Origin: Takakia lepidozioides
Taxonomy: Eukaryota > Plantae > Bryophyta
Length of the DNA stretch: 64,000 nt
Direction: 5' to 3'
Assembly: GCA_030704615.1 (NCBI GenBank)
Contig: CM060733.1
Location: 19,096,001-19,160,000, forward strand
How positions within the stretch are numbered: position 1 is the stretch's first letter; every line of letters begins with the position of its first letter. The notes under the pieces are model-generated. The model did no database searches. It worked only from the letters and a program-made list of their open reading frames with translations, and was not told where the DNA came from. A program made the translations under genes and the position numbers. Of the stretch, positions 20,501-62,542 are shown in pieces.

Positions 20501-20545
20501 CAGGGTGGCCGTATGAGATTTGAGCAGCGCATCACTACCAGATGA
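17530..20545 (+). CDS. Conserved plant uncharacterised protein with a putative plastid transit peptide, multi-exon
   Basis: Ser/Arg-rich N-terminus from ATG 17530. Main exon ~18375-19017 reads WQAFQGRVGGEWDGYGADF..ELPRAVVPDAFREWGVEIHDWQTQCPTLA..LLPTVGCEADAAT..EGPFRNGESLGGC. Further exons at ~19886-20052 (LLPKDMW..IETGWL) and 20504-20545. The first-exon boundary is uncertain. Confidence 0.7.
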
Positions 20546-34471: not shown

Positions 34472-36193
34472 TTACGTGACAGCGGTGACAGATGATACAC
34501 AAGAGATGAAGTCTGGATCTTCCTGCAGTCTCTTCGCAACATCGGGAGGCAGTTTGAAGTTTATTTCTATTGTGCCATTGCTGTTCTCTGGAAAAAAACC
34601 GATCAATGGACTGACGGTAGACTTCTTGGCGTAGAAGACAGTATAGGCAAAAGCCGGGCCCCATCCGAAGTCACAACGTTCAAGACTTGGGAACCGAGTT
34701 GAACCTCCAGTAAGCACATCAGTCAAAGGTCGAAAATCACTGACAAACAACCATTCTTTTTTTTCTTTCTCCATCATGGTAAAATAAGACTTGATTTGTT
34801 CAGCGGTGAGATCTGCAATCGTCATGTGCAGCAGGTTTGCAGCATATGAGATTCCATTTCCCAAAAGCTCTCCCACAGTGGTGACTGCCACTGCGGTAAG
34901 AATAGCATTTCCAAAATAATTCGTAGAGAGCTCTGGCCACCGTTTCCTGCAATCCACGCTATTGAAGTATCGAGTTTCCTCCGTATCTGCAAGCAATCGA
35001 GCCCGGGTAATGGCCCTCCAGACATGTGCACTGATCACTACATAAGCACTGTAAGTAGATCCATCTTGTGAATCCTCCCATGCTTTACCTTTGAGCTTCT
35101 TTTGCATCGGTAGATCAAAAAACACGTGCAAAGTTGTTGGGTCTAGGGCATGAGTCACGATAGGAGGACCCTTTGAATCCTTGACGTAACGATTACCCAC
35201 CAACGGTAACCTCGTACTAAAAGCCTTTCGAAAGGTTTCTGTCCAATCTGAGTTGTCTGACTCTGATGCCAATTTGACTAGATTGGCTCGCGAGCTAAAA
35301 TTGGGAGGAAGGGAGATGCGTTCCCCACGGGCGAGCTCTGCCCATGACTTGATAAATTGCCACACTGTCATTCCATCTGCGATTCCATGGAAGTAAACAT
35401 AACCAAGTACATAGCCGCCACACTTGAGATGAGTGATCTGCGGTTTTCCAAAAGAATCGATATATCACTCCGAAACTCGAATTGGGTTATACATGTGCAT
35501 TGCGATCAACAGTGCTAGTCTACTATTGCACATGTCATGTGTCATAACCTTCACACCTGAAATGGAAGCCATTCAATGACGTGCAGAGATATTGGAAGCT
35601 ACCTGGGCGCCGAAAAGAGGACCGCGGGTATGCCAGGTACCGAAGTCCTTCCCATGGAAGGGGATGGGTTGGACAAAGTGTTGATACATGTCAGCCATGT
35701 TGTAGTTACTTAGCTCCCGCACAGTGATGGGAGCTGAAGCCTCAACAAACTCCACCCCTGCATCGTTACAGACCACGGCTGTCTCCCCGTCTTCGGCTTG
35801 TACAAACCGGCCTGCATGACATGTCATGGTCTCCCAACGTCGTCATCTAGTTTCCCCGAAGCCTAGATACCAAAGCTGGCATGACAGACTTGGATAATCG
35901 CATCTAGATAGTACTGTAGCCGCCGTGTAGTCGGTGCACTCCTGAAATGATTTACCTGCAAGTGGGTAGTACTCTGCCAGCGCTCTTGAGAAACTCTCCC
36001 TTAGTTTTCCATTGAACTGCTCCACACTGAGGTCTTCTTCAGCGCTAGCGTCGAACAGGAACACCTGTCTGAGGGGAGGAGCTCTCAGAATACGGAGATC
36101 GAAGCTCGTAAGTGGGAGCCGCTGCAACTCCCGCCTCTGGTCAGGACGTGGCGTGGGAACCACCATGGTTTTTGATACGACACTCACATCCAT
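34472..36193 (-). CDS. BAHD-family acyltransferase, 3 exons (36193-35956, 35811-35603, 35437-34472), apparently intact
   Basis: LPLTSFD, ALAEYYPLAG|R, CNDAGVEFVEA, Q|ITHLKCGGYVLG, the catalytic HxxxD (HGIAD), NYFGNA and DFGWG are all in frame across GT-AG introns. Confidence 0.92.
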
Positions 36194-38039
36194 TTTAAAC
36201 AAGTGTTGACTTCACCGGGAAGTTTGTGACTTGGTGAGCTAGGCGCAAGCTAAATAGGAATCCAGAGTCAAAGAGTACTAGACAATGATCAATGGAAGGT
36301 CTGAAATCATGTCGATGCTGATCGATCACGAGTCAGGAAGGAGTCTAAGCTAGAGCTGGATATAATCCTCGAACCTCAGAGGATAGTTCACACAGTCCAC
36401 CGGTGAACATCAGAGGAACTCTGAACTTTGACACTTCTGTGAGGTCTCCACACCCCTCTCACATGCGCATCACTAACGACGCAGAAAGGGGTATGAACAA
36501 GGGCTCTCCAGAAGCAAATCCTAGATTATGAATAACCCGGGCCGGCCAGAGCAGCCCTTGCTGCCGAAATCCGGCAAAAGTACCGTAAGATGGCAGGAGT
36601 GCATTAAGTTTTTTCCTTATTTCTATTATCTTCCCTTTTTTCCTTACCTTTAATAAACTGGGGCCTTATTCCCTTCTACTAAAAAAACAAAAGAAAAACA
36701 AATGATCTGGGCCTCTGGCGTTTGCCTTTCTGACTTGGCGTGCCTGCCTGACCCTTTTTTCGCGTTGGAGGATCTATAATTTACTGGGCCCTGCCTTGGA
36801 AAGGGACTACCGTACTGTGCTGAGTCCACTTTCATGAATATCTTGAGTGGGCACAGGTTCCCTTGCCGCCCTTCCTTATGTGTTCCAGTAATGCATGAAT
36901 ATAGATACTATTGATATTAGATGAACTTTATAGATGAATGTCCACATTAGTACGTATAATCCAATGGTGGATGTCAATATGACATATCATATCTGTATGT
37001 GACATTACCACTTCCAATATCTAATTCCAAACAAAAATAAATAAATAAATTCCGAACATCTAAGATTGGATGTCTAGATGTCTTAGATTTTTTTGATTTT
37101 TTCTTAGATTACCAAACAAACGATCTCAAGATGTAGGATTTGAATTTTTCTTTATTGGACTGGCTTGGAATCCCTTCCTACCGAAATTTTTGCTGTCAAC
37201 TTTGCTCTATTTTGAAATGTTGTGACTGGGCTTACGAGGGTTAATAGTAGCAGCTTGTGAGGCCTTTCTCATATCTAAGTCACAAGGAAGGATCGATAAT
37301 TTTTTCTCAAAAACAGTAGTGCCGCATAGTTTTGTAAAAGACCCAAGTGGGGTGATTATACAATTACGGGATTTTGAGCACACTTTCCATGAAGAAGCTA
37401 TGCGAGCAAATTTTGTTCACAATTTCTTTGTAGTGATTATGATGATTTGGTGGACGGGAATGCTGAAGACACCGAGGATATTCCTGATATCTACCTTGAC
37501 CTTAGTGTAGACGAAACTATGTGTAGATGTCTTGCAAATCGGCACATTGAAAATGAGGAGATTCATGATCTCAATGTGGTGGACGAGGTAGATGGAGAAA
37601 TCATGATGATTAGCGAGGAAGATGAATATGATGACATTGTCGAGTCCATGCAGGGGCCTTTTGAAGTTACATGGAGCTCTCGCAAATAGATGCGACTTGT
37701 ATGAAGTTATTTCCGCACGCACATATTTGTATTGATTTTTGTTCAATGAAAATTTCGATTTTTTTCATCTTATTTTCATCTTATTACAAAAACATGAGAA
37801 GAGGCTTGCAAGCTTTTTGCTGGGATTTTTAGGAATTAGGCACTTTGGTCCCATAGTTTCCGAAGAATTAGGCCAAAATCTGAAAAATTCAAAGAATTGG
37901 CTAGGCACTTTCATTTTGAATTAATTATCGCCTAAACGGTTGTCCAGGGACAGTAATCTGAGAGGGTGGCTGCTAATGTGTGTGAGAAACTTAAGGAAAT
38001 CCAGGCAGCCAATAAGAGGCCACCATTTACCATTCCAGA

Positions 38040-38390
38040 TGTCAAGTTAAATAAGCACAGTGTGAAAACAGCTAGAATAAAACTAGTTATTTGTATTTAA
38101 CACTTGGATTTAGGTCAAGTGTTAAATCAGGTGTCAAGTTTAGTTTGACACCTGGTCCGTCTTATCTTCACGAGAGCGGCAGTCGCGCGGCTCATCTTTC
38201 TCGAGTTGAGCCTGCGCGACCGAGCTCCTGCATGCGTTTAGATCTGAGTGTACTCATGATGGGAGTGTAGGTTGTTGTGGGGTGGAGTCCCCATAGCTTG
38301 GGGTGCCCCTGGCTCGACTTCTATTATAAAGAGTGATAGCGATGGATTTCATATGTTTTGTGTCAACAGTGTCTCTATGCTTGTTTATCA
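38040..38390 (+). repeat. Terminal repeat A1 (351 bp; right-hand part of the LTR)
   Basis: Matches 48057-48407 with only two C/T differences found by eye. Begins TG and ends CA. Confidence 0.95.
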
Positions 38391-38406
38391 CTCGAGAAAG
38401 ATGAGC
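38390..38406 (+). promoter_or_regulatory. Putative self-priming primer-binding site
   Basis: ACTCGAGAAAGATGAGC at the LTR end is the exact reverse complement of 38190-38206 (GCTCATCTTTCTCGAGT). No TGG-type tRNA PBS directly follows the LTR. Confidence 0.7.
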
Positions 38407-39113
38407 GTTATCTAGTGTGTTGGTGCTAAGCTAGATACAATGTTTGTTTTAGCATTATTATAATATATATCTTGGGGCGGGAGTCCATCTGGCCCTGCTG
38501 TTTCAATGGTCTGTGCGCAAGAGTGTAGGCGAGTCTCTCTCTCTCTTCCCCGCCCCTTGTTCTCTCTTTCCCGCCCCTTACAAGCTCGCAAACCGCAAGT
38601 CGCTCCCTCGCTGGTCTGTGCGCAAGAGCATAGGTGCTGTACAGTCCATTAAAGGGAAAGGAAGGAAGAGTCTTAGAAAAGCCGCAAGAGGGAGGGAATT
38701 TGAGCAGTGGCACCATCGAGCGGAAGGGAGGCACGGACTTCGATTGTCGCACAGCATGTCGCTCATGATGGAAGTCCCGGTGTTTCGTAATCTCTGCAGT
38801 TCTGGAAAGTCTGGTAGCGGGAGTGCTTGGAATTTTGCTTTGTACCGTTTGAAATGGAGAATCTGAACGAAGCTGGACCCTACTGTTTTCGGACAAAAAC
38901 AGCGATCTCACCTACTTCTTCTAGCCTACACATAAGGCACTGTTTTGGGTGGGGCTTTCTATCCTTGGCTTGTTCATATTGGCAAGTAGTAAGGCAGCAG
39001 TAGCAAGCCATTTTCTCTGTAAAGAACAGAAGGTAGATTGTCTGTGGCCCCTAAGGAAAACTCTGGGAAGCTATGCCAAAGCATTCTGACGCTAGTGCAA
39101 CGTGCAAATGTCA

Positions 39114-39327
39114 CCTCAGAATCATGTTGCTGGGCCTCAAGACGATGTTGCCTAATGATATGCTAGACGGTCTGGCCCTGCTGTGACATTCGAACACGGC
39201 GTGCTCGCACTTGAGCCTGCACTCGCACCAGCGCTTGCAAGCACCGCAGGGTACTGGCAGCCTGCCTTCGCACTGTGTGGCCCGCACCAGTGCTTGCAGC
39301 CGCACCAACCCTTTCAGGATACGCAGG
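39114..39327 (-). pseudogene. Captured IQ67-domain (IQD) exon fragment, antisense within the retrotransposon leader
   Basis: Reads LRILKGLVRLQALVR(G)HTVRRQAASTLRCLQALVRVQAQVRARRVRMSQQGQ after correcting a 1-bp deletion; then has a TAG stop. Confidence 0.85.
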
Positions 39328-39769
39328 CAACCTCTTCTTGCCTGTTCAACGTCAGAACGCTCATCAGTAACATATGCACAAGCTGCATTTGATCCAGAGC
39401 TACACTCTGTACTGGAGCTGGCCAGTTATGTGCTGCCTGTTTGTCTCTGCTTTGTATAAGGATATGGGCATTGACGAAGAAATTGGTACTGTTTCTTAAG
39501 TTCTCGGGCTTTCTTCTCCTTACTGCTTGCTGGAGGTTATGACATTTCTTCATTTCCTTCCGTCTTCCTTGTCTCGATAGCAAGATTATGTTAGGCTGCA
39601 GTAATGCTTCTATGCACTTGGCAAGTAATGGTAAACCATCTTATTATGAGGCACATTATTGGTTGGAGGTCGAGAAGTCACAGGTGGACCAGCTCAAGGT
39701 CTGAAACCTTCCAAGGCTGTTTACAACATGACAAGAAAGCAGCAGAGATATACCTGCTTACTGGCAAAG

Positions 39770-39905
39770 AGTCAGTGCTAGGAGCTGCATTTGATCCAGA
39801 GCAACACTCTGTACTGGAGCTGGCCAGTGATGCTGAGCTGTTTGAACTATTGAACATTCTCTATGGACAAAGCCTGCTGAGCCTGCTGTTGAAGTCAGTG
39901 GCGCT
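39770..39905 (+). pseudogene. Second captured host-gene fragment (conserved plant unknown protein)
   Basis: AAFDPEQHSVLELASDAELFELLNILYGQSLLSLLLKSV resembles a conserved plant motif of the type DPEL..VLELATD.EL.EL..IL.G.S..SPLLKS (from memory). 46 bp of it is duplicated at 39381-39426. Confidence 0.5.
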
Positions 39906-40373
39906 AGAAGGAGGGAAGCCTATGGGGTGCTAAGCCTGTCGAGCAGGGGTGTGTACTGGTGATACGAGCGTGGGTCAGGGAGCTACTTGGTTCGAGCGCA
40001 AAGGATCAAAGCCCTGGAGTCAGCATAGTCGGGGAACGGCCTCGGGAACCCGTAGATAACCAGGGAACAGGGAACCTAGACAAGTATTAAAAAAAAAAAA
40101 TTAATTAAAAAAGAAAAGAAAAAAAGAAGGTGTTATGTTTAAAGAGCCTGGTTGGTCATATCTTTGTCAAATGAGCTCCGTTTGACTCAGTTTTTGGGGG
40201 GATAGCTGCAGAAAGGGGAAATCTACCTATCTAAACCTGGTTTCTGTTTTTGGGACTCTGCTAAAAATCTATGGAATTTTTAGAGTGTGAGTGTGCCATG
40301 AAAGATCCACAATCCTGTCTCTAGAACCTGTGCTGGTCTATATGAGAGACAAATTGGTGGATGTACTCCTTGC

Positions 40374-41107
40374 ATGGCTGGGGGAAATGAGGACGTAATT
40401 GAAGGGCAGGTCTCTTCTCTTAGTCTGTGCACACAAGGGGACAGGATTTATGTTTCCCAAGGAACTCAGACTGATTTGAGTGGAGAACAGTTGGACGAGT
40501 TGATTGCATACTGGGAGTCAGGCATTAGCAGTAGACAACAGACTGCTGTAGTTGGCATTGATGGCCTCAATATTGCCTTGGACAGTCAGAACTCTGTTGG
40601 AGCCAGTAGTTCTGCAGCTGTAGGTGAAATACCAATGTGGGTGAAAGCTAGGCTTGGAACACAGCCAAAGACAGTCCCGGGGACCAAGGTGTTCAGTCAC
40701 AAGGCCGTGGTGTACTGGAGCAGAGGGTTTGTGCAATCAGACATGGTTGCAGCCGGATACGCTCTGCACAGGGCAACCACGAGCGGGGGTTCATCAGCAA
40801 TGACATGTTTGTTGTGCGTGAAGGAGATGCAGTCATTCGCAATGAGGACACCCGCAACCGTCTCAAAGCTTTCGAGTTGAGAGACTATCAGACCCTACCT
40901 TTGTTTTCTTTAGTGTTTAGTGAGCGGGAGATAGGGGAGTATTGCTTTGTCTCTACCTGGCAGAAAGAGGAGGAGGGTTGGTTAGAGCGAGCTACTGTAG
41001 CTTGGGACAAGGTTAGTGGCAGGTTTCTGGACATAGATATACCTCCTACACCTTACCATCATGCAGAGCGAGGCACTTTGAGAGAAGTCTGGCAGTTGAT
41101 AGCATAG
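40374..41107 (+). CDS. Extra upstream ORF(s) of the retrotransposon, function unknown (overlapping ORFs 40374-40880 and 40805-41107)
   Basis: Two overlapping sense ORFs between the leader and gag, with protein-like composition; no family recognised. Confidence 0.4.
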
Positions 41108-41627
41108 ATCAGGATTAGATCTTGATTGGTCGGGCTTCTATTCTTCCCCTCCATCTCTGTACTATTTTCATTACCTTGTACTTGTAGTTGCCAAAGCCTC
41201 TCTTGGTGGAGGCCAGTCAGTCCGGGGTTTTGGGCTGGGATATTCTGCAGGATCAGCATTGCAGCTGGATTTTGGTGTAGGGGTGTTGATGTTTTGATTT
41301 CTTGTGTTTGGATCCCCCCCAACACCTGCATGCTTGACTGTGCGCCATGTTGGTTTTGTGTGGGCGCTTGCTTTCATAGGGATTAGGCCGGATTTGATCA
41401 CCGGTCAATCCTAGAGTATGCTGTCGGTGGTGAGGCTGGAGTGATGACCAGCAAGACCACCAGTGTTTCTTCTATGGTGAGGCTGGGTTGATGACCAGCC
41501 AACCATAGGAGTTCTTGCGGTGGATGCAAGTGCAGGTGCCCTGAGCCATTGGGATATGACCCTTAAAACTGCAACAGGTGCCCACCCGTGTCACTATTAG
41601 ATTAGTAGTAGAGCCTTATAGTGTCAC

Positions 41628-43105
41628 GTGGAGGAGGTGCACATTGTGAGTGTCATTACGGAGTTACCCAAGGGTGGTGAGGGGAGTACGGCTACAGGCA
41701 GTAACAGTGAGAGTGGGTTCACAAGACGAGGTATTCGGTTCAGACCACCTTCACCGCCACCCTCAATTACTGTAGAGTCAGACACAGACTCGGGGGCTTC
41801 ATCAACAGGTGTGCACTTTCATTCGCCATTGTTGTGGGACGACATGGAGGAGATGTATGGAGCTACCAAGAGGCCTCGTAGGTACTCTGGAGCTGTGGGC
41901 ACAATCGAGTTGGATGACTTTATCCAGGAGTTCGACAGCTGGTGTGATTTGCAGCAGATGCGCAATCCACAACTATTCACCCCATTCATGGCGTGGAAGG
42001 GACTGTTCCAGCATTTGGAAGGCCCGCCTATGGACGATTACCACGAGTTCAGGCGAGGACATGAAGCAGAGATTGAGGAGTGGAGGATGTATTGGTCACC
42101 TGACTACGTCTCCATTACTCGAGGCACGACGCGACCAGTAGCTGCATCAGTACCAATAGCTCCCACTGCCAGCACTAGTAGTGGAGCAGGTAGTGCTGGT
42201 ACTTCTGCAGGTGGTACCAGTTCAAAAGGTGCTACTACTCCTCCTGCCACAACTACAACACATGTGCCTAGATTCAACCCGGTGGTGGAGTTCTTCCAGG
42301 AGTTGCGGAGGAACTACCAAGGTGTACGGACAGAGAAGCTGCGAAGTTTGCAAGACTTCCAGCGCAAACCCAGTGAGAGCCTGCAAGAGGCGTACACTCG
42401 TATGAGGCGCTTGATAAGTGTGACCCAAGGGGTTACTGAAGCTCAGGCAATCCAGTTTTGGTATGGAATTGTGGACAAGGAGCTCAAGAGAAGGGTGCGA
42501 GATGCAACCCTGTTACAAGCAGCCCAACCCACATTAGCAGATGTGTTTCTGCTGGCTGAGCGGATTGAGCTCAACATGGTGGAGGAGCGAGTTGTTACAA
42601 TTGGATTTGGCAAGGACATGCCGGTACGGGGCACAGCTGTCAGCCCACAAGCACAAGGGACTGCCCAACAGCGTGGTCAGGGGGCAAGGTTGCCCAGCCC
42701 AAGTTCCATGGAGCTTACAGGGGACCTCAGGTGCAGAGGCCCGTGGCATCTTTTGCAGGCCAACAGCAACCAGGGGTGATATGTTGGACATGTGGAGGAC
42801 CCCATGTCAAGAGAGATTGCCCAGAGAGTGGCAGAAGGCCGGCACAAGCACAGCCTGCACAGTTGCAGTGTGGGCATTGTGGCAAGTATGGGCATGGAGA
42901 TGCCCAGTGTTATGACTTGCATCCTAAGTTGCACCCAGGCCAGTTCCAAGGGAACAATGGTGGCCGGGGGCGAGGTGGACCAGCCCAGAGAGGACGAGGT
43001 GGTCGGGCACGAGGTGCAGGCCAAAGGCAAGCTCAACATGGCCAAGGACGCGGAGGTCAGGGCGTTGATCAAGGCATGGCCAACCGGCTTCAGCAGAGCA
43101 GGATG
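41628..43105 (+). CDS. gag: Gag-like protein with two zinc knuckles and an RGG-rich tail (frame change at G-run 42680-42684)
   Basis: Capsid-like YSG...LDDFIQEF..W and FQRKPSESLQEAYTRMRRL. After the frame change: CWTCGGPHVKRDC, CGHCGKYGHGDAQC and GGRGRGG repeats. Confidence 0.8.
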
Positions 43106-43107
43106 AC

Positions 43108-44574
43108 ATGCATGGTACGGCGGAGTTGCCTGCCATGGTTGCTCACACTCCGTTGTGGGGTACGAGCAAGGATTTGCAGCAAGCTGCTGATGGACGGGTG
43201 CAACAAGCTTGGGAAGAAGCTTTTGTACCGTCAGGAGAGGAGGAGAGTGCGGTGATTGCACCAGGGCCACCTCAGTTGTCGCCATTGGACACCACACCTC
43301 TTGTGTGGCAGCGGCCGGATGAAGGCATTTGCCTTCTGGACTTGTTTGGCGGGATCAGCACCGGATTGGCTGCTGTGCTACAGGCAGGTGTGCGGGTAAG
43401 GCGTTACCTGTATGTGGAGAGGGATGAGACTGCACGACGCGTCTCACTGCGCCATGTGGCTCAGTTGGTACAGCAGTACCCTGACTTGTTGCCTGTGTCT
43501 GCAGTTCGTGGATACCAACAAGCCTTGCCAGCAGACATTTCCTTGTTGGGGGCGCAAGATTTGGAGCAGGTTGGCTCCATTGATCTGATAGTGGCAGGTT
43601 GGCCCTGCCAAGGGCATTCATCAGCCGGGCATGGCAATGGATTGCGAGACTCGAGGACGGGTCTGTTTTGGGAGATGGTGCGGATTTTGCGCTGCTTGCA
43701 GCTTCATCAAGCTATATCTCCAGCATACATCTTGGAGAATGTACCACTGATGGGTGATTCTCGGGCCAGGGTGATATCCAGTGTGCATCAAGTCCGGTCG
43801 TGGCTTGGGTCAGCAGTGTTGTTGGATGCAGCTGCAGTGGGGTCACGGGCTCATCGTCCACGACTATGGTGGACTAACTTGATGCCACCCGCACTGCTCA
43901 AGCGTGCATTTGATGGGGTGCAGCGGCCAGCACACCTCACCGTGGATGGCATTTTGGACACAGGAAGGCAGTCTCAACGTGTGAGACACGATGACCGTTC
44001 GCCTTTGGCAGTGGTCAACAGGGTGGGTCAACCACGAACAGCATTACCTACACTGCTCAGCTTCCCAGGATCCCATGCTTTTCGGGATGGTGGACCTGGC
44101 CTCCTGTGGGATGCTCAGTTGCAGCAATTAGTGGAGCCTAATGCCGACGAGCGAGAGCGGGCTATGGGGTTTTCCACTGGGACCACGGCGGTGCCTTCTC
44201 TTTCTGAGGCATCACGTCATCAGGTGTTGGGGCAAGCAATGGATCTCAATTGCTTGACCTGGATTGTCAGCTTGGCTATGGCTGAGCAACGTAGAGTGCG
44301 GAGTGCACTTCCCTTGACGGTCTCTCTGCCTACTGAGACGGTACAGGCAGCGAGTGGGGGCGAGCCGGTGAGGACCACGAGGTGTAGACATCCATGGCAC
44401 ATGTGGGAGGTGCTCGAGGTTCAGAGGGAGTTGGCAGCGAAGGCAGCTGTGATGGATGAGGTTGGGGATTCTTCTCGGGATGAGGAGGTTCTCAATGATG
44501 AGATGATGGGGCAGGATGAGGCCTTGTCATTGACTGAGCAGGAAGGGGGTACTGCTCAAGAGGCTGCAGCATAG
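43108..44574 (+). CDS. C5-cytosine DNA methyltransferase (DNMT) domain encoded by the retrotransposon, same frame as pol
   Basis: Ordered motifs: I LLDLFGGISTG, II YVERD, IV IDLIVAGWPCQGHS (catalytic PC at 43603-43608), VI YILENV, VIII RAHRPRLWWTN, IX ERERAMGF, X LGQAM. Confidence 0.93.
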   Translation: MHGTAELPAMVAHTPLWGTSKDLQQAADGRVQQAWEEAFVPSGEEESAVIAPGPPQLSPLDTTPLVWQRPDEGICLLDLFGGISTGLAAVLQAGVRVRRYLYVERDETARRVSLRHVAQLVQQYPDLLPVSAVRGYQQALPADISLLGAQDLEQVGSIDLIVAGWPCQGHSSAGHGNGLRDSRTGLFWEMVRILRCLQLHQAISPAYILENVPLMGDSRARVISSVHQVRSWLGSAVLLDAAAVGSRAHRPRLWWTNLMPPALLKRAFDGVQRPAHLTVDGILDTGRQSQRVRHDDRSPLAVVNRVGQPRTALPTLLSFPGSHAFRDGGPGLLWDAQLQQLVEPNADERERAMGFSTGTTAVPSLSEASRHQVLGQAMDLNCLTWIVSLAMAEQRRVRSALPLTVSLPTETVQAASGGEPVRTTRCRHPWHMWEVLEVQRELAAKAAVMDEVGDSSRDEEVLNDEMMGQDEALSLTEQEGGTAQEAAA

Positions 44575-47500
44575 CAACCACGGGACGCGTCCTCTACCTC
44601 TAAGCCCACTGGACTTAAGGTTGCAGTTACGGAGGACAATTGGGAGCCTGACATTGGACCCATTGTCACCGGAGGAGAGAGACGACGTATTTGGCGGTTC
44701 CTGAGGGCTTATAGGAATTGCTTTGCCTTCAGTTTGAAGGACTTGGGAGCACTGAAGGGTCAAGAGATCCGTATTGAGTTGGCCACTGACACGCCAATCT
44801 TTCGGAGACCCTATAAATACAGTGACATGGAGAGGTCTTTGATTCAGATGAGGACTCAAGATCTCTGGGAGGCAGGTTTGGTGGAGCTCTCTGGTGGAGA
44901 GTATGCTTCAGCCACAGTGATGCCAGCTAAGAAGGATGTCTATGGCAATTGGACGGAGAGACGTATGTGCGGTGATTACCGGCCTGTAAATCGTCAGACC
45001 AAGTCCGATAGGTATGCCATGCCAACACCAGAGGAGATCTTTGATGCCATTGGGCATTCCAAGGTCTTTAGCACGTTGGATTTACGATCCGGATATCACC
45101 AGTTGCCGATCAAGGAGGCGGATAAGCAAAAGACGGCATTCTGGGGGATCAATGAGCACGGGAAGGATTGCCTATACCAGTGGCGGTTCTTACCATTTGG
45201 GCTTAAAAACGCTCCCGCTGAGTTTCAAAGAGTCATGGACAGGATTCTAGCAGGGGTGGAGTTTGCTCGGTGCTACATAGATGACATCATCATCTTTAGT
45301 GCTACGGTGGAGGAGCATGAGAGACACCTTCAGGGGGTATTTGAGCGCTTGAGGACGCACGGATTGAAGTTACATCCGGGCAAGTGCAAGTTTTTCCACA
45401 ACCAGATTGAGTATCTGGGTCACATGATATATCCTGGAGGATTGGGGGTACAGCAGACTAAGGTAGAGTCCATTGCACAGGTTCCATGCCCCACGGATGT
45501 GAGCCGAGTTCGAGCTTTCATGGGGTTAGCAAACTATTACAGACGGTTTGTTAAGGGATTTAGTGCCATTGCAAAGGCTCTAACCAAGCTGACCAAGGTG
45601 GACCAGGAGTGGCAGTGGGAAGATGAGCAAGAACAAGCTTTTCAAGAGCTCAAGGCGAGGTTGACCTCGGCGCCCATCTTGAGACGACCTATCAGGGGGC
45701 GTCCTTTTCAGCTGCATACAGATTGGAGCATGCTGGGGCTTGGAGCGGTGCTCACACAGGTGGATGATGAGGGAAGAGAGTTCGTAGTGGCTTATGCTAG
45801 CCGCTCGAACAATGCTGCAGAGTCTAAGTATAGCTCATATGAGGGAGAATGCTTAGCTGCAGTGTGGGCCGTGGCACACTTCAGGTGCTATTTATACGGC
45901 AATCTCTTCACCCTTGTCACGGATCACCAACCACTCAAGTGGTTGATGAAGTCAGACAAGCTTACGGGGAAGCTTGCACGGTGGGCACTCATCCTTCAAG
46001 AGTATGACTTTCAGGTGGTGCATCGACCGGGTTTGGTCAATCGAAATGCAGATGGGTTGAGTCGTAATCCATGCACGAGCCAGCAGGATGACACTGGAGC
46101 TCGGTGGCATGGTGAGACGGACGAGGAGATGGTGCCCGGATGGCATGCATCTGCATTTCTGTGTATCTTGGCAACGGAAGGCCAGGTTGGACCTACAACA
46201 GGGATGACTGTAGATCAAGTGTCTGAGGACCCTGAGGCCAGCAATGAGCAGGGTGGCGCCAAAGATATACATGAGGATTCAGTTGTGTTGGACTACCTCC
46301 GCAGTGGAGACACGGCAGCCACTATGACTGCCAAGGAGAGGGATCGGATCCTACAACGAGCCAAGAGGTTCAGGTGGGAGGGGACACACCTGCTCCGAGT
46401 GTGGGAGGATGGTCGAGTGAGGATTGTGCCTCACCCAACACAGCGGGCACGGTTAGTGCGGCATGCCCATGAGGAGTTGGGGCATTTTGGGGTGCGACGC
46501 ACTCATAGTCTACTGCAGGGGCAGTATTGGTGGCGTGGTATGCACACAGAGGTGCAATAATTTGTGGCTAGGTGCATGGTGTGTGACAGGATGCGTGCTT
46601 CATTCAACGCCCCTACTCCACAATTGCACCCTCTTCCGATCATGGGATTGGGCTACAGGTGGAGTCTTGACTTCGCAGGGCCGTTGCCACTGACCATGCG
46701 CCACAACAAGTACGTGTTGGTGATGGTGGAGCACTTCTCCAAGTGGATTGAATTGGTTCCATTGCCTGATAAGGCTAGTGAGGGAGCTGCGTATGCATTC
46801 CTGGATTGTGTGCTTAGCCGATTCGGTGCTCCAGCTGAGGTACTCACGGACCAAGGGAGAGAGTTCTTGGGGGAGTTTCAGGCTTTGTGTGACAAGGCCT
46901 TGATAGACCACCGCACCACTTCTCGGGATCATCCTGAAGCCGATGGCTTGGCAGAGAGAGTTGTTCAGACAGTAAAGAGGGGTTTGCGCAAGTATGGCTT
47001 GCAGAAGGGACACCTAGGAGATTGGGACCTTCAGTTACCCTGGTTAGCCATGGGCTACAGGTTCAGCAAGCAAGCATCACTTGTCTCCTTCTCACCATAT
47101 TTTCTTCTCTTTGGCCGAGAGCCGGATTTGCCTACATCCATTCGCAGAGAAGCTGCTACAGTTCTTAACCTTGACGATCCGGACATGTGGGCACGTGCAT
47201 GTGAGCAGCGTGCAGAGTTGTTCAAGAGAGTCATGCCCATGGCTTTCGAGAACCTTGCCATTGCACAACACCGTGATACGTTGAGGTATGCTACCATACG
47301 TGGTGGGGGCTATCGTCCTGGGGTTCGGAGATTCAACCCTGGTGACTATGTCTATCTGCAGCAGACTGCTCCTACGACCCTGGATGTGACTGCAGGACGT
47401 GTTATTTTGAGGGTTCGAGAGGTCTTACCCTCAGGCGTCTTGGTCTTGGAGGGTCGGGATGACATAACTTGGAAGGACCATGTGCGTAATTGTGCGCCAT

Positions 47501-47709
47501 GTCACCTTCCGAATGTTGATGGCAGGATTGACCCAAACCTGGTAGTGGTATCTGCAGGTTTGAGGTGCATGTTGTGTGGGTCTGCTAAAGGGGCAGCCAC
47601 CATGCTGGTGTGCGATCGATGCTCTAGAGGTTGGCATATGGGATGCTTGACTCCACCTCTTGAGATGGTTCCGGATGGGGATTGGTTATGTCCACATTGC
47701 ATTGGATAG
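44575..47709 (+). CDS. pol: Pol: reverse transcriptase, RNase H, integrase and C-terminal PHD finger (in-frame TAA at 46558-46560)
   Basis: RT: RMCGDYR, LDLRSGYHQ, PFGLKNAP, YIDD. RNase H: LHTDWS, YSSYEGECLA, TDHQPL, NADGLSR. Integrase: HEELGH..C..C and D-D-E (LDFAG, TDQG, GLAER). PHD C4HC3 at 47566-47700. Confidence 0.95.
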
Positions 47710-47954
47710 TGGGAGTGGATACAACCATGGAAGGCTAACAAGAAACGCAAGGCCCAGCTACTAAGAGACCTTGAACACACGAGGTCCTGGCCCAAGTTCA
47801 CAGATTGCAAGATGACGACTAACGATGGGGCTACTCTTGTACCCGGCCTCTTGGTCTATAGAGTTTGAGTACAATAGGGACAGTGATAGAGGACTTAGTA
47901 CGGCTGTGGCTATTACATCTTGTAGGTATCTGGAGGTAGAGGGACCTATCCACC

Positions 47955-47969
47955 AGCTAGGGGGGCGAT
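47955..47969 (+). promoter_or_regulatory. Polypurine-tract-like sequence immediately before B1
   Basis: AGCTAGGGGGGCGAT directly precedes TGTGGC at 47970. Confidence 0.7.
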
Positions 47970-48407
47970 TGTGGCAGACTACTTTATTGTGCATATATGT
48001 GTGGTGTGGTTTGGACAGCGATGTAGTTGTGTAGCGATATGTATGCGCACGACAGCTGTTAAGTTAAATAAGCACAGTGTGAAAACAGCTAGAATAAAAT
48101 TAGTTATTTGTATTTAACACTTGGATTTAGGTCAAGTGTTAAATCAGGTGTCAAGTTTAGTTTGACACCTGGTCCGTCTTATCTTCACGAGAGCGGCAGT
48201 CGCGCGGCTCATCTTTCTCGAGTTGAGCCTGCGCGACCGAGCTCCTGCATGCGTTTAGATCTGAGTGTACTCATGATGGGAGTGTAGGTTGTTGTGGGGT
48301 GGAGTCCCCATAGCTTGGGGTGCCCCTGGCTCGACTTCTATTATAAAGAGTGATAGCGATGGATTTCATATGTTTTGTGTCAACAGTGTCTCTATGCTTG
48401 TTTATCA
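47970..48407 (+). repeat. Complete 438-bp LTR (B1 + GC + A2), TG...CA
   Basis: Starts just after the PPT with TG and ends TTTATCA, the same end that abuts the PBS in A1. Confidence 0.85.
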
Positions 48408-48408
48408 T

Positions 48409-48493
48409 TGTGGCAGATTACTTTATTGTGCATATATGTGTGGTGTGGTTTGGACAGCGATGTAGTTGTGTAGCGATATGTATGCGCACGACA
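48409..48493 (+). repeat. Terminal repeat B2 (85 bp; left-hand part of the LTR, displaced to the right end)
   Basis: Matches 47970-48054 except one C/T. Ends GACA and is followed by the CAGA TSD. Confidence 0.93.
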
Positions 48494-51239
48494 CAGACTT
48501 AGCCCATTCCCTAATATAAAAGCTTATGCCAAACGAGGATGATTTGTGTGATCATCATAGTGTACTTGGATGAGTATGATATTTGGATGATGGGCACTTG
48601 ATGCCCCTGCATGTGATTTGATTGGCCCACCCGTGAGGCTCCTCTTGCGAGAGATCCTTCCTTTCTAGCTTGGCGTGCTTTACTGGCTACTTCCCCGTTT
48701 TAACGCCCGGGCTCTAAGAGGAGAAGAGCATATCCCCCGGTAGAGGAATTGGTCTTACTGTGAGCACAACCCACATTCATGGGAGTTTTATGTTTTTTAA
48801 CATGGTCATAGAAATTCTAAGTTTTCAAAATGGAATAAAACCATAAGCTGGGTATAGAGGACTGGTGCATTTGTACGGTACATCTGCGCCAATTCAGCAA
48901 GGCGAAACCTTCGGTAGAGTAGCCAGAAACCCTAAACCTATAGCGGCGGCGACGAATTTCGCATTGAGAAATGACATGTGATATGGGCACAAACCTAAGC
49001 ATCGGTGGGTTTCGCATTGAGAAACCCTTAGTGGTATAGCTTGAGTCAAAACTTTGTATATGAAATCCCATCCCCCAACAATCCAACATCCAAAAAGAAT
49101 GGGTGGGGGCTTTAAAAGTGACATTCATCCTTTTAGTTGCAATGTGATTTCTTCTCAGGCTAGTTTCGCCATGCGAAATTATCCATGGGTGAGGACCCTA
49201 ATTTCACGAAAATTTGGTGAAAATTCGGGGAATATGCCCTTGTGTACCCAACCTCTAATGCAGTAGGTGATACTAGAATGGTAATTTGATCTTTCTTGTT
49301 AATATATCTAGCTCTATGAAATTTTTGTTTCTCCTCTTGGGGATAGTTTTACCCACCGCCTTGGAGCACCGCCTACAACAAAGAGGGGCTTAGGGTTTCA
49401 AAGGAAATGAATGATAGCTGCCACGCCAACCGCCTTGCTTTTCATCCAGCCCACGAATAGCAGGTCCTTAGAAGTACACCGACGCTTTGGCAGTGGCGGC
49501 GCTTCTCTGTTTTAGTTGATACTCCATCTTACATCACGCTATGCATACCAACCCCCTGCCTGAAGAAGGTCAGACAACAGGAAAGAGGATGGGTTGGAAA
49601 GTCCGGGAGGGCCGCTCACTATTTTTCTCCCGCAAACTCTAAGTATGGGAGTTTTCCATGAAGGTCAGTGCATGCATGGATGGATGGCAATAACAGAGTA
49701 GATCGCGCAGTTGACACCAATGCCTTTTGTATAATAGAGGGCCGTGAAACTATGCTGGACTTGGCCAATGGCCCCTCATTATGAGAACCATGGGTCCAAG
49801 GCAGCTCCACGACAGAGTGATCAAGCATGCTCCAAGAGTGTCTGCAGCCTTTTAGGCTCAGCCAGTACTGCAGGCATCCTGAGTGATGTCCAGAAAAGCA
49901 GCTAAACGAGTAACACCAGTGTATCAGTGTATCAGCCCACACACATCGTAAACACGTTATCATCTACCGGGGCTCTCTTATGGTACATATCGGAGCAGTT
50001 GTTGTTTCCTGAGCTGTTTGCACTGGATAGCTAGACGTCTCCAAACTTTGCACCTTCAAGGGGAATCCGAACTATAAATTCTCCATTTTGATAAAGTATC
50101 CTACCACGTCCGGCGGTTGCTCAGCAAAAGGATCCAGCGAGGCAATAACAACGACAACATGGGATTTGATACTTTCAAACGTGTCCGACCAAACTGAAGT
50201 ACCTTGCGTTTATTTGTCTCTCGGTAGAAAGTATAGATCACATGTTTACATACTCTCGCCACAACAAGAACCAGCTCACATCAGATGAGAAATCTTTGCT
50301 CTGACATCGACAACCATTGAAATAGTAATACGCCTTGAGAGTCCAGCCACCACTGCAATCTCTGGCTTCGCTCATTCCTTCGAGAGCACCTTCCGCGAGG
50401 TGAAGCGGTGCCACAATGTGTGAATGCAGCATTGCTCCATATGCAGTTCTTCTCCTTGTAATATCGTTACAAGTCGCCAGATGCAAATCCGATGTGCTAG
50501 CTAAGCCTACCAAGAACTTGACACGAGAACCCATAATTCGCTTGATATAAACAATTCTCCATCTCACCAATGTGGATCAGCACAGGAGAGGAGGGTCGAG
50601 TATGGAGGGGACTAAGAGGGTGATACGAAATTATCCCACTTCTTCCGAAGTCTTCTAACCTCGGTTCCCCTTTTCGGCCTGACGATACCGAAGGAGCTAT
50701 AATGGTGAATGTACATATATGCATAAAAAATGGGCTCCAAGAAACGCCGTCACAAGCATCCGTGAGGACTTAGAATTCTCAAGCCTCTGCTAATTTTCCC
50801 GCTATAGTTAGCCAACCACCAGCAAGAAGTGATATATTGAGGGTTACGAGCCAATTTTGTAGCCCACCCGATGGTTTAGACATGGCTGGATTTAGTGAAG
50901 ACAACAGACATAGCTGTACCTGTGGTACATTGTGAGGCGTGAAATTGTTTCGATTGAGTGCTGCTAGAGCAAATTAGGAAGGAGAGGCGTGCGGGGATGC
51001 CAATGAACTGCATCAGAAAATGGACTTTGTATTCAGGTTGCCCGCACATCGGGCAATTGAATATCTCCTTTTCCTCCCTGCATCTGTTTATTGTTCAAAG
51101 GTAGACTCCCCACTCTGAGTTTAAAATTCAGTCAAGTGCCGAAGGTAGGTAGGACCTTCCGTTCATTCCTTCAGGTCCTAAAGGTCAGGCAGCCGAGAGA
51201 GAATGAGAAGAAGACAGAAACCAATAGAAAGTAGGGAGA

Positions 51240-53621: not shown

Positions 53622-56205
53622 TTACGTGACAGCGGTGACAGATGATACACAAGAGATGAAGTCTGGATCTTCCTGCAGTCTCTTCGCAACATCGGGAGGC
53701 GGTTTGAAGTTTATTTCTATTGTGCCATTGCTGTGCTCTGGAAAAAAACCGATCAAAGGATTGACGGTAGACTTCTTGGCGTAGAAGACAGTATAGGCAA
53801 AAGCCGGGCCCCATCCGAAGTCACAACGTTCAAGACTTGGACAAACAACCATTCTTTTTTTTCTTTCTCCATCATGGTAAAATAAGACTTGATTTGTTCA
53901 GCGGTGAGATCTGCAATCGTCATGTGCAGCAGGTTTGCAGCATATGAGATTCCATTTCCCAAAAGCTCTCCCACAGTGGTGACTGCCACTGCGGTAAGAA
54001 TTGCATTTCCAAAATAATTCGTAGAGAGCTCTGGCCACCGTTTCCTGCAATCCACGCTATTGAAGTATCGAGTTTCCTCCATATCTGCAAGCAATCGAGC
54101 CCGCGTAATGGCCCTCCAGATATTGGCACCGATCACTACATAAGCACTGTACGTAGACCCATCTGGTGAATCTTCCAGCGCTTTATCTTTGAGCTTCGTT
54201 TGCATCGGTAGATCAAAAAGAATGTGCAAAGTTGTTGGGTCTAGGGCCTGAGTCACGATAGGAGGACCCTTTGAATCCTTGACGTAACGATTACCCACCA
54301 ACGGTAACCTCGTACTAAACGCCTTTCGAAAGGTTTCTGTCCAATCTGAGTTGTGTGACTCTTATGCCAATTTGATTAGATTGGCTCGCGAGCTAAAATT
54401 GGGAGGAAGGGAGATGCGTTCCCCACGGGCGAGCTCTGCCCGTGACTTGATAAATTGCCACACTGTCATTCCATCTGCGATTCCATGGAAGTAAACATAA
54501 CCAAGTACATAGCCGCCACACTTGAGATGAGTGATCTGCGGTTTTAAAAAAGAATCGATATATCACTCCGAAACTCGAATTGGGTCATGTGCATTGCGAT
54601 CAAAAGTGCTAATCTACTATTGCACATGTCATGTGTCATAACCTTCACACCTGAAATGGAAGCCATTTAATGTCGCGTAGAAGCTACCTGGGCGCCGAAA
54701 AGAGGACCGCGGGTTTGCCAGGTACCGAAGTCCTTCCCATGGATTGGGATGGGTTGGACAAAGTGTTGATACATGTCAGCCATGTTGTAGTTACTTAGCA
54801 CCGGCACAGTGATGGGAGCTGAAGCCTCAACAAACTTCACCCCTGCATCGTTACAGTCCACGGCTGTCTCCCCGTCCTCCCCGTCTTCGTCTTGTACAAA
54901 CTGGCCTGCATGGTCTCCCAACGTCTACTAAGCTCTATGCAAGTATCTACCCAATATTAGTGGGTTAGCTTCCCTTGCATGCCTAGCTAGCTTCACACAT
55001 GAACATCAAGCCTAGTGGCCAACAACAAAGAGAACCCACACCCCTCCTAGAGATCCCAATGCATGGTTAGCTCTCTAGGGGTTAGATCTTTCCACTCTTA
55101 AGCCAAAAGACAGCATAGATAAAAATGACAACTGCTTGGACCTCTTTGCCACTAAGGAGGGTTAGTCTCTCTCTTTCCCAAGCTCCTACTACTCCTTGGG
55201 TAGCCGGCATGGTCTCCCAACGTCTACTAAGCTCTATGCAAGTATCTACCCAATATTAGTGGGTTAGCTTCCCTTGCATGCCTAGCTAGCTTCACACATG
55301 AACATCAAGCCTAGTGGCCAACAACAAAGAGAACCCACACCCCTCCTAGAGATCCCAATGCATGGTTAGCTCTCTAGGGGTTAGATCTTTCCACTCTTAA
55401 GCCAAAAGACAGCATAGATAAAAATGACAACTGCTTGGACCTCTTTGCCACTAAGGAGGGTTAGTCTCTCTCTTTCCCAAGCTCCTACTACTCCTTGGGT
55501 AGCCAAGACCTTCATCCTTCTCTTTGTTAATCCGCGTTCATCCTTCTACTGCTCATCCAGTTTGCCTTGAGCTTGTTGTCTTTGTCACTGAGCTTGTTGA
55601 CTCTTTCTCCGGCACACTCTATACTCTACTTGCCAAATCCAAGTGTGTTTCTCATCACCTCTTTTCCCCTTACAAACCTTGCACCCATCTGAAATGCAGG
55701 CTTTTAAGGTTAATTTGTAATTTTACAAATCATGTTTGTATGAACCTTCCTGTTCTGACCTTGTTTTTGTTTTGATTGACATTACAAGCATGGCTTCAAA
55801 CTCAACCAATTGGGCTTCATGTGGGGGGATGCAACAAAGCTGGCAACTTTGCCACTTTAGGCAGTCTAGTTTCCCCGAAGCCTAGATACCAAAGCTGGCA
55901 TGACAGACTTGGATAATCGCATCTAGATAGTACTGTAGCCGCCATGTAGTCGGTGCACTCCTGAAGGGTGGATCATGATTTACCTGCAAGTGGGTAGTAC
56001 TCTGCCAGCGCTCTTGAGAAACTCTCCCTTAGTCTTCCATTGAACTACTCCACACTGAGGTCTTCTTCAGCGCTTGCGTCGAACAGGAACACCTTTCTGA
56101 GGGGAGGAGCTCTCAGAATGCGGAGATCGAATTATAAGTGGGAGCCGCTGCAACTCCCGCCTCTGGTCAGGACGTGGCGTGGGAACCACCATGGTTTTTG
56201 ATAGG
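53622..56205 (-). pseudogene. BAHD acyltransferase pseudogene (duplicate)
   Basis: Near-identical to 34472-36193, but with a TCA>TAA stop near 54362, a frameshifting deletion near 53840, an altered/deleted start region, and a ~940-bp insertion in intron 1. Confidence 0.88.
54908..55504. repeat. Tandem duplication, 299-bp period, 2 copies
   Basis: gcatggtctcccaacgtctactaag...ctccttgggtagcc at 54908-55205 and 55207-55504; no differences seen by eye. Confidence 0.93.
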
Positions 56206-62002: not shown

Positions 62003-62542
62003 GGCCAGACCCCACAGAACAGATCGCACACAAAATAACCGAGAGACGAATCCACACAAAACCCAACTAAACCCGAGTGAGGAAGACGCCAATCTCCTCT
62101 GTTCCTGCTTTAGGGTATGGATTTCCAGACTTGTCACATAAACCCTCTCTTGAACCTTCAGCCTCTCCCACCCTCTCTGTAGTGAAAAACTTAGGTCAAG
62201 GAGCCCACACCTACAGTTTACTGCCTCACTCCAGTCTTACTCCCAGTTCAAAGAAGGAAAGGATTGTCCACCACATATTCTCCAATTTCCATCAACTGAG
62301 TTATGGGAGCACTAGATTCATTATTCCTTGAGGCATGAAGCTGAGGACATTATAACACTTGGTTGCACTCTCGAACAACTTGGAGGCTACAAAAACTTAA
62401 AAGTAGCAGTGACATCACAAAGATCAGACATTGAACTAGTATCCTAATAGTCCTAGCTACATATATGATTTACACTTGGTGCGCCGCCATACAATGGTTA
62501 CAGACCATCAGATCTCTGCACCAAAAGTAAAATGTGGTGGCT

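Follow-up and report, generated by a model that had tools for sequence, protein, structure and literature searches.

A defective Ty3/gypsy element with a DNMT3-like methyltransferase and split terminal repeats in Takakia lepidozioides

The window analysed here, a stretch of 64,000 nucleotides from the genome of Takakia lepidozioides (Bryophyta; GenBank assembly GCA_030704615.1, contig CM060733.1, positions 19,096,001 to 19,160,000 of the forward strand), harbors at positions 38040-48493 a single Ty3/gypsy element. Its parts are arranged in the order A-PBS-leader-gag-DNMT-RT/RNaseH-integrase-PHD-PPT-B-GC-A-B, where A and B are direct repeats, PBS is the primer-binding site, DNMT a C5 DNA methyltransferase, RT the reverse transcriptase, and PPT the polypurine tract. 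These features identify the element as a defective land-plant representative of the already described KnitGypsy-Dnmt3 family. An initial interpretation made without database searches (the sequence-only reading) had proposed a distinct lineage in land plants; the lineage is real, but it is not a new system, because the combination of features has been published for the charophyte Klebsormidium nitens (PMC5890265).

The unusual ends of the element were delimited by repeat finding and self-BLAST, which defined the repeat pairs, and by direct reading of their order. The left terminus is repeat A1 (38040-38389; this and all other oriented features of the element lie on the plus strand), which comprises 350 bp, begins with TGTCA (TGTCAAG...), and is predicted to contain the repeat-unique 5' (R-U5) part of a long terminal repeat (LTR); no B-like sequence is present upstream of it. 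The right end consists of repeat B1 (47968-48054; 87 bp, ending in CGACA), the dinucleotide GC, repeat A2 (48057-48406), and repeat B2 (48407-48493), which adjoins A2 without an extra base and forms the right terminus, again ending in CGACA. The two copies of A are 99.4% identical (2 mismatches in 350 bp) and those of B differ by one mismatch. Together, they show 3 mismatches in 437 bp, all of them C/T, a divergence of 0.7% that marks the copy as a recent insertion. The B/A junction (48051-48060) reads GACA-GC-TGTT and is composed of the bases of both integrated termini with GC between them; it corresponds to the family palindrome GACAGCTGTC, whose final C is a T in this copy. A short target-site duplication of 4-6 bp, as in other Ty3/gypsy elements, is present in the form of CAGA on either side (38036-38039 and 48494-48497). 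By contrast, the two identical terminal LTRs with TG...CA ends that define such elements are not found: the left side carries A and the right side B-GC-A-B, and the outer ends, TGTCA...CGACA, are permuted with respect to PBS and PPT. The sequence-only reading had already recognized a young copy with paired repeats (given as 436 bp), the permuted A...B-GC-A-B termini, and the 4-bp duplication, all of which are borne out by these coordinates.

Relatives of the DNMT (46-72% identity) occur in Calypogeia fissa, Sphagnum species, Marchantia polymorpha, Riccia, and many metagenome contigs. Relatives of the integrase-PHD region are up to 83% identical, with values of 81% for Calypogeia fissa, 52-57% for K. 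nitens (PHD finger in two of three proteins), and 48% for Haematococcus. A metagenome scan with the integrase-PHD alignment yielded 80 loci, some of them cut by contig ends (loci are numbered with the prefix L), and searching 1.84 billion representative proteins with a profile returned 548 clusters at E ≤ 1e-30, including many polyproteins of 1000-3500 residues. The DNMT is present between protease and RT in 29 of the 36 loci with at least 6 kb of upstream sequence, and the PHD finger in 76 of 87 loci. The intact order in streptophytes is gag(CCHC)-protease-DNMT3-[UAG]-RT-RNaseH-DDE integrase-PHD, whereas chlorophyte-type polyproteins carry the DNMT between RNase H (RH) and integrase (IN), in the order RT-RH-DNMT-IN-PHD (P0252, which is the Scenedesmus pol protein KAF8056149.1, P0225, P0244, and P0224; locus L088). 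Because the two positions differ, the DNMT seems to have moved or to have been captured twice within the lineage.

Several relatives share the architecture of the ends. The metagenome contig L001 encodes protease-DNMT, RT-RNaseH, and integrase-PHD genes (DNMT identity about 49%), followed by B(118)-GC-A-B. In Calypogeia fissa (L002), A1 is followed by a PBS complementary to position 158 of A, and the PPT by B-GC-A-B-GC-A-B; the repeat period is 439 bp, equal to that of the window copy, and the target duplication is AGGT. Two contigs of K. nitens (L005 and L007) carry GGAGGGG-B-GC-A-B with the junction CGACA-GC-TGTCA, and Scenedesmus sp. PABB004 (L088) has a pol protein of 3225 residues within A...PPT-B-(CA-GC-TG)-A-B, flanked by CGGC. 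The number of units at the 3' end varies among copies (0, 1, or 2). Other loci are less complete: Marchantia (L003) retains only an old DNMT fragment; the decayed Sphagnum copy (L004) is of a form without terminal repeats, and its ends were found only with homologous A and B probes; and the Haematococcus locus (L006) contains an integrase-PHD region but is rearranged (tandem array, inverted duplication) and has no usable ends. The joint presence of these features in Calypogeia, Scenedesmus, and metagenome loci, and of the integrase-PHD region and 3' end in K. nitens, excludes a one-off combination and supports the view that DNMT, PHD finger, self-priming PBS, split repeats, palindromic junction, and 4-bp duplications are co-inherited and define a real lineage that is present in land plants.

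Two side observations concern individual relatives. One DNMT of the family (P0026) is annotated at NCBI as part of a metagenome-assembled genome of “Candidatus Obscuribacterales”, which probably reflects contamination of the bin with DNA of a moss or an alga. The outer flanks of the Scenedesmus insertion (L088; 5584-5732 and 18252-18400, 149 bp) are 98.7% identical, with a third copy at 20382-20523; the three copies probably represent another repeat around the insertion site.

The anatomy of the ends is conserved. The arrangement B-A-B follows directly after the integrase in 38 loci (the window copy, L001, L002, L005, L007, and 33 of the 80 loci of the scan), and in 36 of them the B/A junction departs from CGACAGCTGTCA at no more than 3 positions; the A and T positions are invariant. 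Almost all deviations (47 of 49) are C>T or G>A and include the CHG-context G of CAGCTG; together with the C/T mismatches between the repeats, this pattern of decay is consistent with heavy cytosine methylation of the copies. The core GACAGCTGTC is a perfect palindrome, consisting of the right terminus (..GACA), the GC spacer, and the left terminus (TGTC..). Perfect 4-bp duplications flank the start of A and the end of B in ten insertions (CAGA in the window, AGGT in L002, AAGG in L008, CATA in L025, ATGT in L044, ACCT in L069, CGGC in L088, TACA in L011, CCAA in L060, and GTAT in L071), which shows that insertion is of the DDE type, with a 4-bp stagger at termini TGTCA...CGACA.

The boundary between A2 and B2, which follow each other without an extra base, coincides with the end of A as defined by the PBS and the start of B as defined by the PPT. 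The A/B junction would therefore represent the end of U5 followed by the start of the unique 3' region (U3) of a predicted LTR with the structure B-GC-A. The outer ends of this predicted LTR are not TG/CA in L001 and L002, whereas the internal junction is always CA-GC-TG. Within young copies, A1/A2 and B1/B2 are 98-100% identical, yet B is strongly divergent between lineages, so that in each cycle both copies of a repeat must be derived from a single template. Each of the 18 loci that include the 5' end begins with a single A, and A-B-GC-A was never encountered. In addition, there is a repeat-less integrated form, A-PBS-...-PPT-B, at 27 loci, 25 of them with 1 kb or more of sequence beyond the 3' end. 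It is complete in L004, L011, L048, L060, L071, and L076 and represented by about 20 further 3' ends; these insertions are bounded by TGTCA...ACA, three of them show perfect 4-bp duplications, and they may be either primary products or the result of deletions between the two copies of B.

The second conserved signature is the mode of priming. The PBS of the window copy (38390-38406) lies directly 3' of A1 and is the exact 17-nt reverse complement of a stretch inside A (38190-38206), which is the predicted 5' end and self-primer of the genomic RNA, in agreement with the LTR-complementary PBS noted earlier. A PBS that pairs with the 3' end of a tRNA is expected to start with TGG, which is absent here when the sequence is read directly. 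In the minimum-energy RNA fold of 38190-38410, the PBS pairs with the 38190-38206 stretch (z = -5.4). The same pairing exists in seven other loci with different, covarying sequences, and the stem closes the minimum-energy fold (from the pairing position to the PBS) in 8 of 8 loci. Across lineages, the complementarity extends over 17, 12, 17, and 15 nt, and the partner in A is located at about positions 150-180 (subfamily sequences ACTCGAGAAAGATGAGC, ACTTAGAGAACT, ACTCAAAGAACTATGTT, and AATTCTAGAAAAACT). This pattern is the signature of self-priming of the Tf1 type. The PBS begins directly after A1 in every lineage examined, and a G-run is found directly 5' of B1 in nearly all related loci; in the window copy, it is the polypurine-like tract AGGGGGGCG (47959-47967), which is separated from the PBS by an internal part of 9.5 kb.

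The coding region starts with a gag-like open reading frame (ORF; 41628-42779), which has a weak match to Retrotrans_gag (E = 0.0019, below the Pfam cut-off) and is homologous at the nucleotide level to the corresponding region in Calypogeia and Sphagnum copies. The translation of the following ORF (42731-43255), in a frame that differs from those of both gag and pol, contains two CCHC zinc knuckles (the nucleocapsid part of gag); a Pfam match to zf-CCHC was obtained for its counterpart in L001 but not for the window ORF itself. The DNMT3-like cytosine methyltransferase (43108-44571, with the stop codon to 44574; PF00145, E = 2.7e-13) possesses the motifs FGG, PCQ, ENV, and RxR. Among solved structures, it is closest to DNMT3A and DNMT3B (E = 1.5e-10), with plant DRM and bacterial M.HhaI ranking behind them, and its catalytic residues are invariant in the family alignment. 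RT, RNase H, and the start of the H2C2 domain of the integrase follow at 44602-46557 (RVT_1, E = 1.3e-32; RT_RNaseH, 2.6e-36; Integrase_H2C2, 2.3e-10); RVT_1 and RNase H lie in an ORF at 44734-46560, and the tblastn match to the RT of L001 begins at 44602. The last ORF (46564-47709) encodes the DDE integrase core (rve, E = 2.9e-14), with visible D, D, and E residues, and a C-terminal PHD finger (PF00628, E = 1.7e-10) with a C4HC3 pattern at about 47566-47700; no Pfam match to a chromodomain was obtained at the C-terminus of the integrase, where the PHD finger is found instead. The domain order RVT_1, RT_RNaseH, Integrase_H2C2, and rve, with gag upstream, is that of a Ty3/gypsy pol. Both the methyltransferase in the pol frame and the integrase-PHD fusion, which had been deduced from the translations, are thus confirmed by domain matches: DNMT, RT, and integrase share one reading frame, which is interrupted by in-frame stop codons at 44572 (TAG) and 46558 (TAA).

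The two stop codons differ in their distribution. The TAA (46558-46560) disrupts the zinc-binding H2C2 domain of the integrase, whose ORF is uninterrupted in L001, and is a defect of the window copy. The TAG between DNMT and RT is followed by CAA-CCA (44572-44580) and represents a candidate site of programmed stop-codon readthrough. The motif TAG-CAA-YCN is present at the homologous place in the window and 12 other loci of a liverwort/Sphagnum-type clade (including L002 12386-12394; L008 6940; L011, L023, L025 8020; L012 2371; L016 5900; L030 1470; L031 5335; L033 1664; and L001 3849), with one additional TAA variant, and the frame is open at the DNMT/RT boundary in six loci of another moss clade. 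The site resembles the UAG-CAR-YYA readthrough context of plant viruses. The conserved UAG suggests programmed readthrough, by which gag-protease-DNMT would be produced in excess over RT-integrase; no paper describing such a UAG-CAA stop as conserved at this position was found.

A retropepsin between gag and RT was recognized in the window copy neither by Pfam nor by comparison with relatives, in agreement with the sequence-only reading; as a trait of the family, however, its absence does not hold. Relatives L001, L002, and L004 possess a DTG retropepsin immediately 5' of the DNMT (PF13650 in L001, E = 1.4e-5). The Calypogeia and Sphagnum copies match the protease-DNMT protein of L001 from residue 50-65 onward, the window copy only from residue 293, and its interval from gag to DNMT is about 1.2 kb shorter than in the Calypogeia copy (L002). 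Because the relatives have kept the protease and the window copy is shorter in this region, the gap is a copy-specific deletion of about 1.2 kb, which is located at or after the CCHC ORF (42731-43255). With these lesions, the window copy is defective and non-autonomous; given that its repeats have diverged by only 0.7%, it was probably mobilized in trans by intact relatives.

In the family, the accessory domains have been maintained by selection. The ratio of nonsynonymous to synonymous substitution rates (dN/dS) of the DNMT relative to the window copy is about 0.08-0.11 (two usable pairs, with dS near saturation), and the PHD region has a median of 0.23 (22 pairs), which shows that both regions are under purifying selection; synonymous sites in RT and the integrase core are saturated in all pairs, so that their dN/dS is not estimable. 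The encoded DNMT3 probably methylates the DNA of the element itself, and the PHD finger probably steers the integrase to a particular chromatin state.

The same combination characterizes KnitGypsy-Dnmt3 of K. nitens, which carries an intron-less DNMT3-related domain with Ka/Ks < 0.2 in a gypsy pol (de Mendoza et al. 2018, Nat Commun 9:1341, PMC5890265) and whose repeats have been described as “DIRS-like”, with the arrangement A-coding-B-A-B (Fig. 4c legend of the same paper). The window element shares with it the gypsy pol, the DNMT3-like domain in the frame of the polyprotein, the purifying selection, and the A-coding-B-A-B layout. The two fetched K. nitens loci also resemble the window copy in the integrase-PHD (56% and 57% identity), in the G-run that precedes B, and in the CGACA-GC-TGTCA junction. 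The assignment is weakened by the fact that the fetched K. nitens contigs end before the DNMT, so that the identity with KnitGypsy-Dnmt3 rests on the description in that paper. The window copy differs in its land-plant host (the nearest named relatives of the element are found in the liverwort Calypogeia fissa) and in its state, with no protease and a broken integrase. The text and supplements of PMC5890265 do not mention a PHD finger, and no discussion of self-priming, palindromic junction, target duplications, or a repeat-less form was found in that paper. DNMT3 in retrotransposons of “streptophytes” has been mentioned later (PMC12344493; preprint 10.64898/2026.05.21.726589). In the searchable literature, which excludes subscription journals and Repbase, no description was found of bryophyte or chlorophyte members, or of the self-priming PBS, the palindromic junction, the 4-bp duplications, and the repeat-less form.

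A further relative in the green lineage may be Gypsy-7a_cRei of Chlamydomonas reinhardtii, whose polyprotein contains a PHD finger and whose right LTR ends with 8 bp that are absent from the left one (Craig et al. 2022, PMC9940879). It resembles the present family as a gypsy element with a PHD finger, and the offset of its LTRs corresponds, on a small scale, to an A at the left and A+B at the right; by its description, it differs in that no DNMT is listed and that the PHD finger is listed before the integrase.

Methyltransferase-carrying retrotransposons, which have so far been documented in dinoflagellates and one charophyte, bear on the question of how mobile elements manipulate the silencing machinery of their hosts. 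If the distribution found here holds, the family is present also in liverworts, mosses, and chlorophytes, including the tractable Marchantia and Sphagnum, and is in places young; the functions of the element-encoded DNMT3 and PHD finger would then be testable in model bryophytes. Programs for LTR detection that expect two identical terminal repeats probably mis-delimit or miss such elements.

The internal palindrome, the exact A/B junction, and the coexistence of repeat-bearing and repeat-less insertions provide a testable handle on the route of integration, which was not found worked out for such a DDE-integrase element in the searchable papers. The model that fits best, and to which we assign about equal chances of being right or wrong, is an end-joined (2-LTR-type) route, with the window element as a recently inserted, non-autonomous copy of a Viridiplantae lineage (“Gypsy-DNMT3”). 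Transcription would start near position 151 of A, and the 5' end of the RNA would fold onto the PBS and prime minus-strand synthesis as in Tf1, with plus-strand synthesis beginning at the G-rich tract before B. Reverse transcription would yield a conventional linear DNA, [B-GC-A]-PBS-...-PPT-[B-GC-A], whose outer ends would not be substrates of the integrase. Joining of these blunt ends, either in a 2-LTR circle or by repair after the action of integrase, would create the exact A/B junction. The integrase would then nick both strands after CA at the palindromic CGACA-GC-TGTCA inside the PBS-proximal LTR; nicking around the GC spacer would leave 3'-recessed ends with 2-nt 5' overhangs, and the nicked ends would insert as A-PBS-...-PPT-B-GC-A-B. 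If both LTR palindromes were cut, or if the two copies of B recombined later, the product would be the repeat-less A-...-B, which should be a dead end because the 3' R is missing. Variants of strand transfer that might produce A followed by B (alternative plus-strand primers, read-through of the primer, fold-back of the minus strand, rolling synthesis) were considered on paper, and none of them gave this order.

Parts of this route have precedents. Self-primed reverse transcription is described for Tf1/Tf2 of fission yeast (Levin 1995, as cited in PMC2864245). The likeness to Tf1/Tf2 lies in a PBS directly after the 5' repeat that is complementary to the LTR stretch taken as the 5' end of the RNA (predicted here); Tf1 differs in its ordinary, identical LTRs, in having a chromodomain instead of a PHD finger, and in the absence of a DNMT. 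In retroviruses, integrase is documented to cut 2-LTR circles at their palindromic LTR-LTR junction (prototype foamy virus, PMC1180852; human immunodeficiency virus 1, PMC1905944), and the step proposed here would likewise use the CA...TG palindrome of juxtaposed ends as the substrate of a DDE integrase. However, the retroviral palindrome is made by the joining of ends, whereas the one considered here is built permanently into the interior of the predicted LTR and has a 2-bp spacer, and the joined ends form A/B, which is not palindromic. The circular intermediate postulated by the sequence-only reading is a reasonable proposition insofar as the B/A junction resembles an att site of joined ends, but no sequence in the present data set contains a circle.

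Several observations weigh against integration from joined ends. All evidence comes from integrated copies, and none of the sequences represents a circle or an end-joined molecule. If a 2-LTR circle were cut symmetrically, the isomer A-B-GC-A-PBS-...-PPT-B should arise as often as the observed form, yet it was found at 0 of 18 5' ends; among about ten fully delimited repeat-bearing copies, the absence of A-B-GC-A...B would have a chance of about 0.001 if both forms were equal, a value that is affected by the imperfect independence of the copies. Because the predicted isomer is absent, the model requires an unexplained preference for the PBS-proximal site. The extra A-B unit in the Calypogeia copy (L002, 15454-16429 of CBCUJL010000032.1) needs a further event, and both the transcription start and the poly(A) sites are inferred from the sequence. 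Moreover, some metagenome contigs contain the same insertion twice, so that the 38 repeat-bearing loci correspond to about 32 distinct sites and the counts overstate independence. Contig pairs that share flanks are L062/L064, L077/L083, L014/L019, and L050/L058; in L062/L064, the A/B junction is imprecise, with 8 bp missing and one G added.

We know of no LTR retrotransposon for which an obligatory cycle of integration from joined ends has been established. The more far-reaching proposition, that the family represents a Viridiplantae-wide gypsy clade in which the integrase site has moved from the tips of the LTR to an internal palindrome, the joined-ends cycle has become obligatory, and this cycle is coupled to a self-encoded DNMT3 and a PHD reader that would jointly set and read chromatin marks at the new copy, is tentative and rather less likely than not.

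A DIRS-like route without end joining is a rather unlikely alternative. The RNA would extend from inside A1 through the A2/B2 boundary to the end of B2, the near-full-length cDNA would be completed by using the internal B-GC-A as template for the missing outer bases, and the integrase would trim a linear DNA ending in A...B. The layout is indeed that of PAT/Ngaro-type elements and has been called DIRS-like for KnitGypsy-Dnmt3, and the route would explain why only A...B-A-B and never A-B-A...B is found. However, separately inherited parts of B and R should drift, whereas B1 and B2 are 98-100% identical in young copies. The route has no role for the covarying PBS after A1 or the G-run before B1, leaves the coincidence of the A/B boundary with the PBS and PPT landmarks in every lineage unexplained, and needs an unknown primer at the 3' end of the RNA.

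It is improbable that the repeat-less A-...-B is the form that integrates, after cutting of both LTR sites, and that the GC-A-B tail is added later by tandem duplication or unequal recombination. Such a sequence of events would be compatible with the 27 loci that end in a single B, three of them with perfect 4-bp duplications, and with the variable count of 3' units (0, 1, or 2). However, without A2 the unit would lack the 3' R, so that strand transfer would be impossible and the lineage would not be sustained; in addition, chlorophyte, charophyte, liverwort, and moss copies all carry the A-B tail with an identical, exact junction, and young copies with 99-100% repeat identity already have it.

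The last two explanations are refuted. That the element is a one-off chimera, a nested insertion, or an assembly artefact of an ordinary gypsy element with A as its LTR is highly improbable: the A of the window copy starts with TG, can be read as ending in CA, and is directly followed by the PBS, but the duplication flanks the start of A1 and the end of B2 rather than the end of A2, A does not end in CA in relatives, and the layout recurs in independent assemblies of Calypogeia, Klebsormidium, Scenedesmus, and Sphagnum (repeat-less) and in dozens of metagenome contigs. Recombination of a circle at a specific site by a tyrosine recombinase, as in DIRS/PAT/Ngaro elements, has an almost negligible probability; the split direct repeats A1...B1-A2-B2 with an internal copy of the joined ends are a point of likeness, but recombinase elements make no target duplications, whereas Gypsy-DNMT3 has a DDE integrase with a conserved catalytic triad and 4-bp duplications, and no tyrosine recombinase domain was detected by Pfam in the scanned ORFs of the window or L001.

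The leader between PBS and gag (38407-41400) is unusually long; with about 3 kb, it exceeds that of the Calypogeia relative by about 2 kb. Within it are an A-rich tract (40085-40128) and a 64-bp stretch that is duplicated internally (39381-39443 and 39783-39844). No homology to the leader was found in any related locus compared, no Pfam domain in its three scanned ORFs, no match in Rfam and tRNA scans, and no detectable homolog in a protein collection for its largest plus-strand ORF (40374-40880), the only one searched. The proposed capture of host exons is therefore not substantiated, and the A-rich tract hints at some retro-copied insert.

Fragments of BAHD-type acyltransferases are located on either side of the element (34472-35371 and 53753-54301, both on the minus strand). 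The element may have inserted into a small acyltransferase cluster. Other flanking ORFs encode a single-ORF peptidase M16 (60473-62137, minus strand) and a protein with a weak GATA zinc-finger match (26733-27335, plus strand); the BAHD-type acyltransferases and the peptidase M16 point to a plant host. The ratio of observed to expected CpG is about 0.5 and is alike in the element and its flanks.

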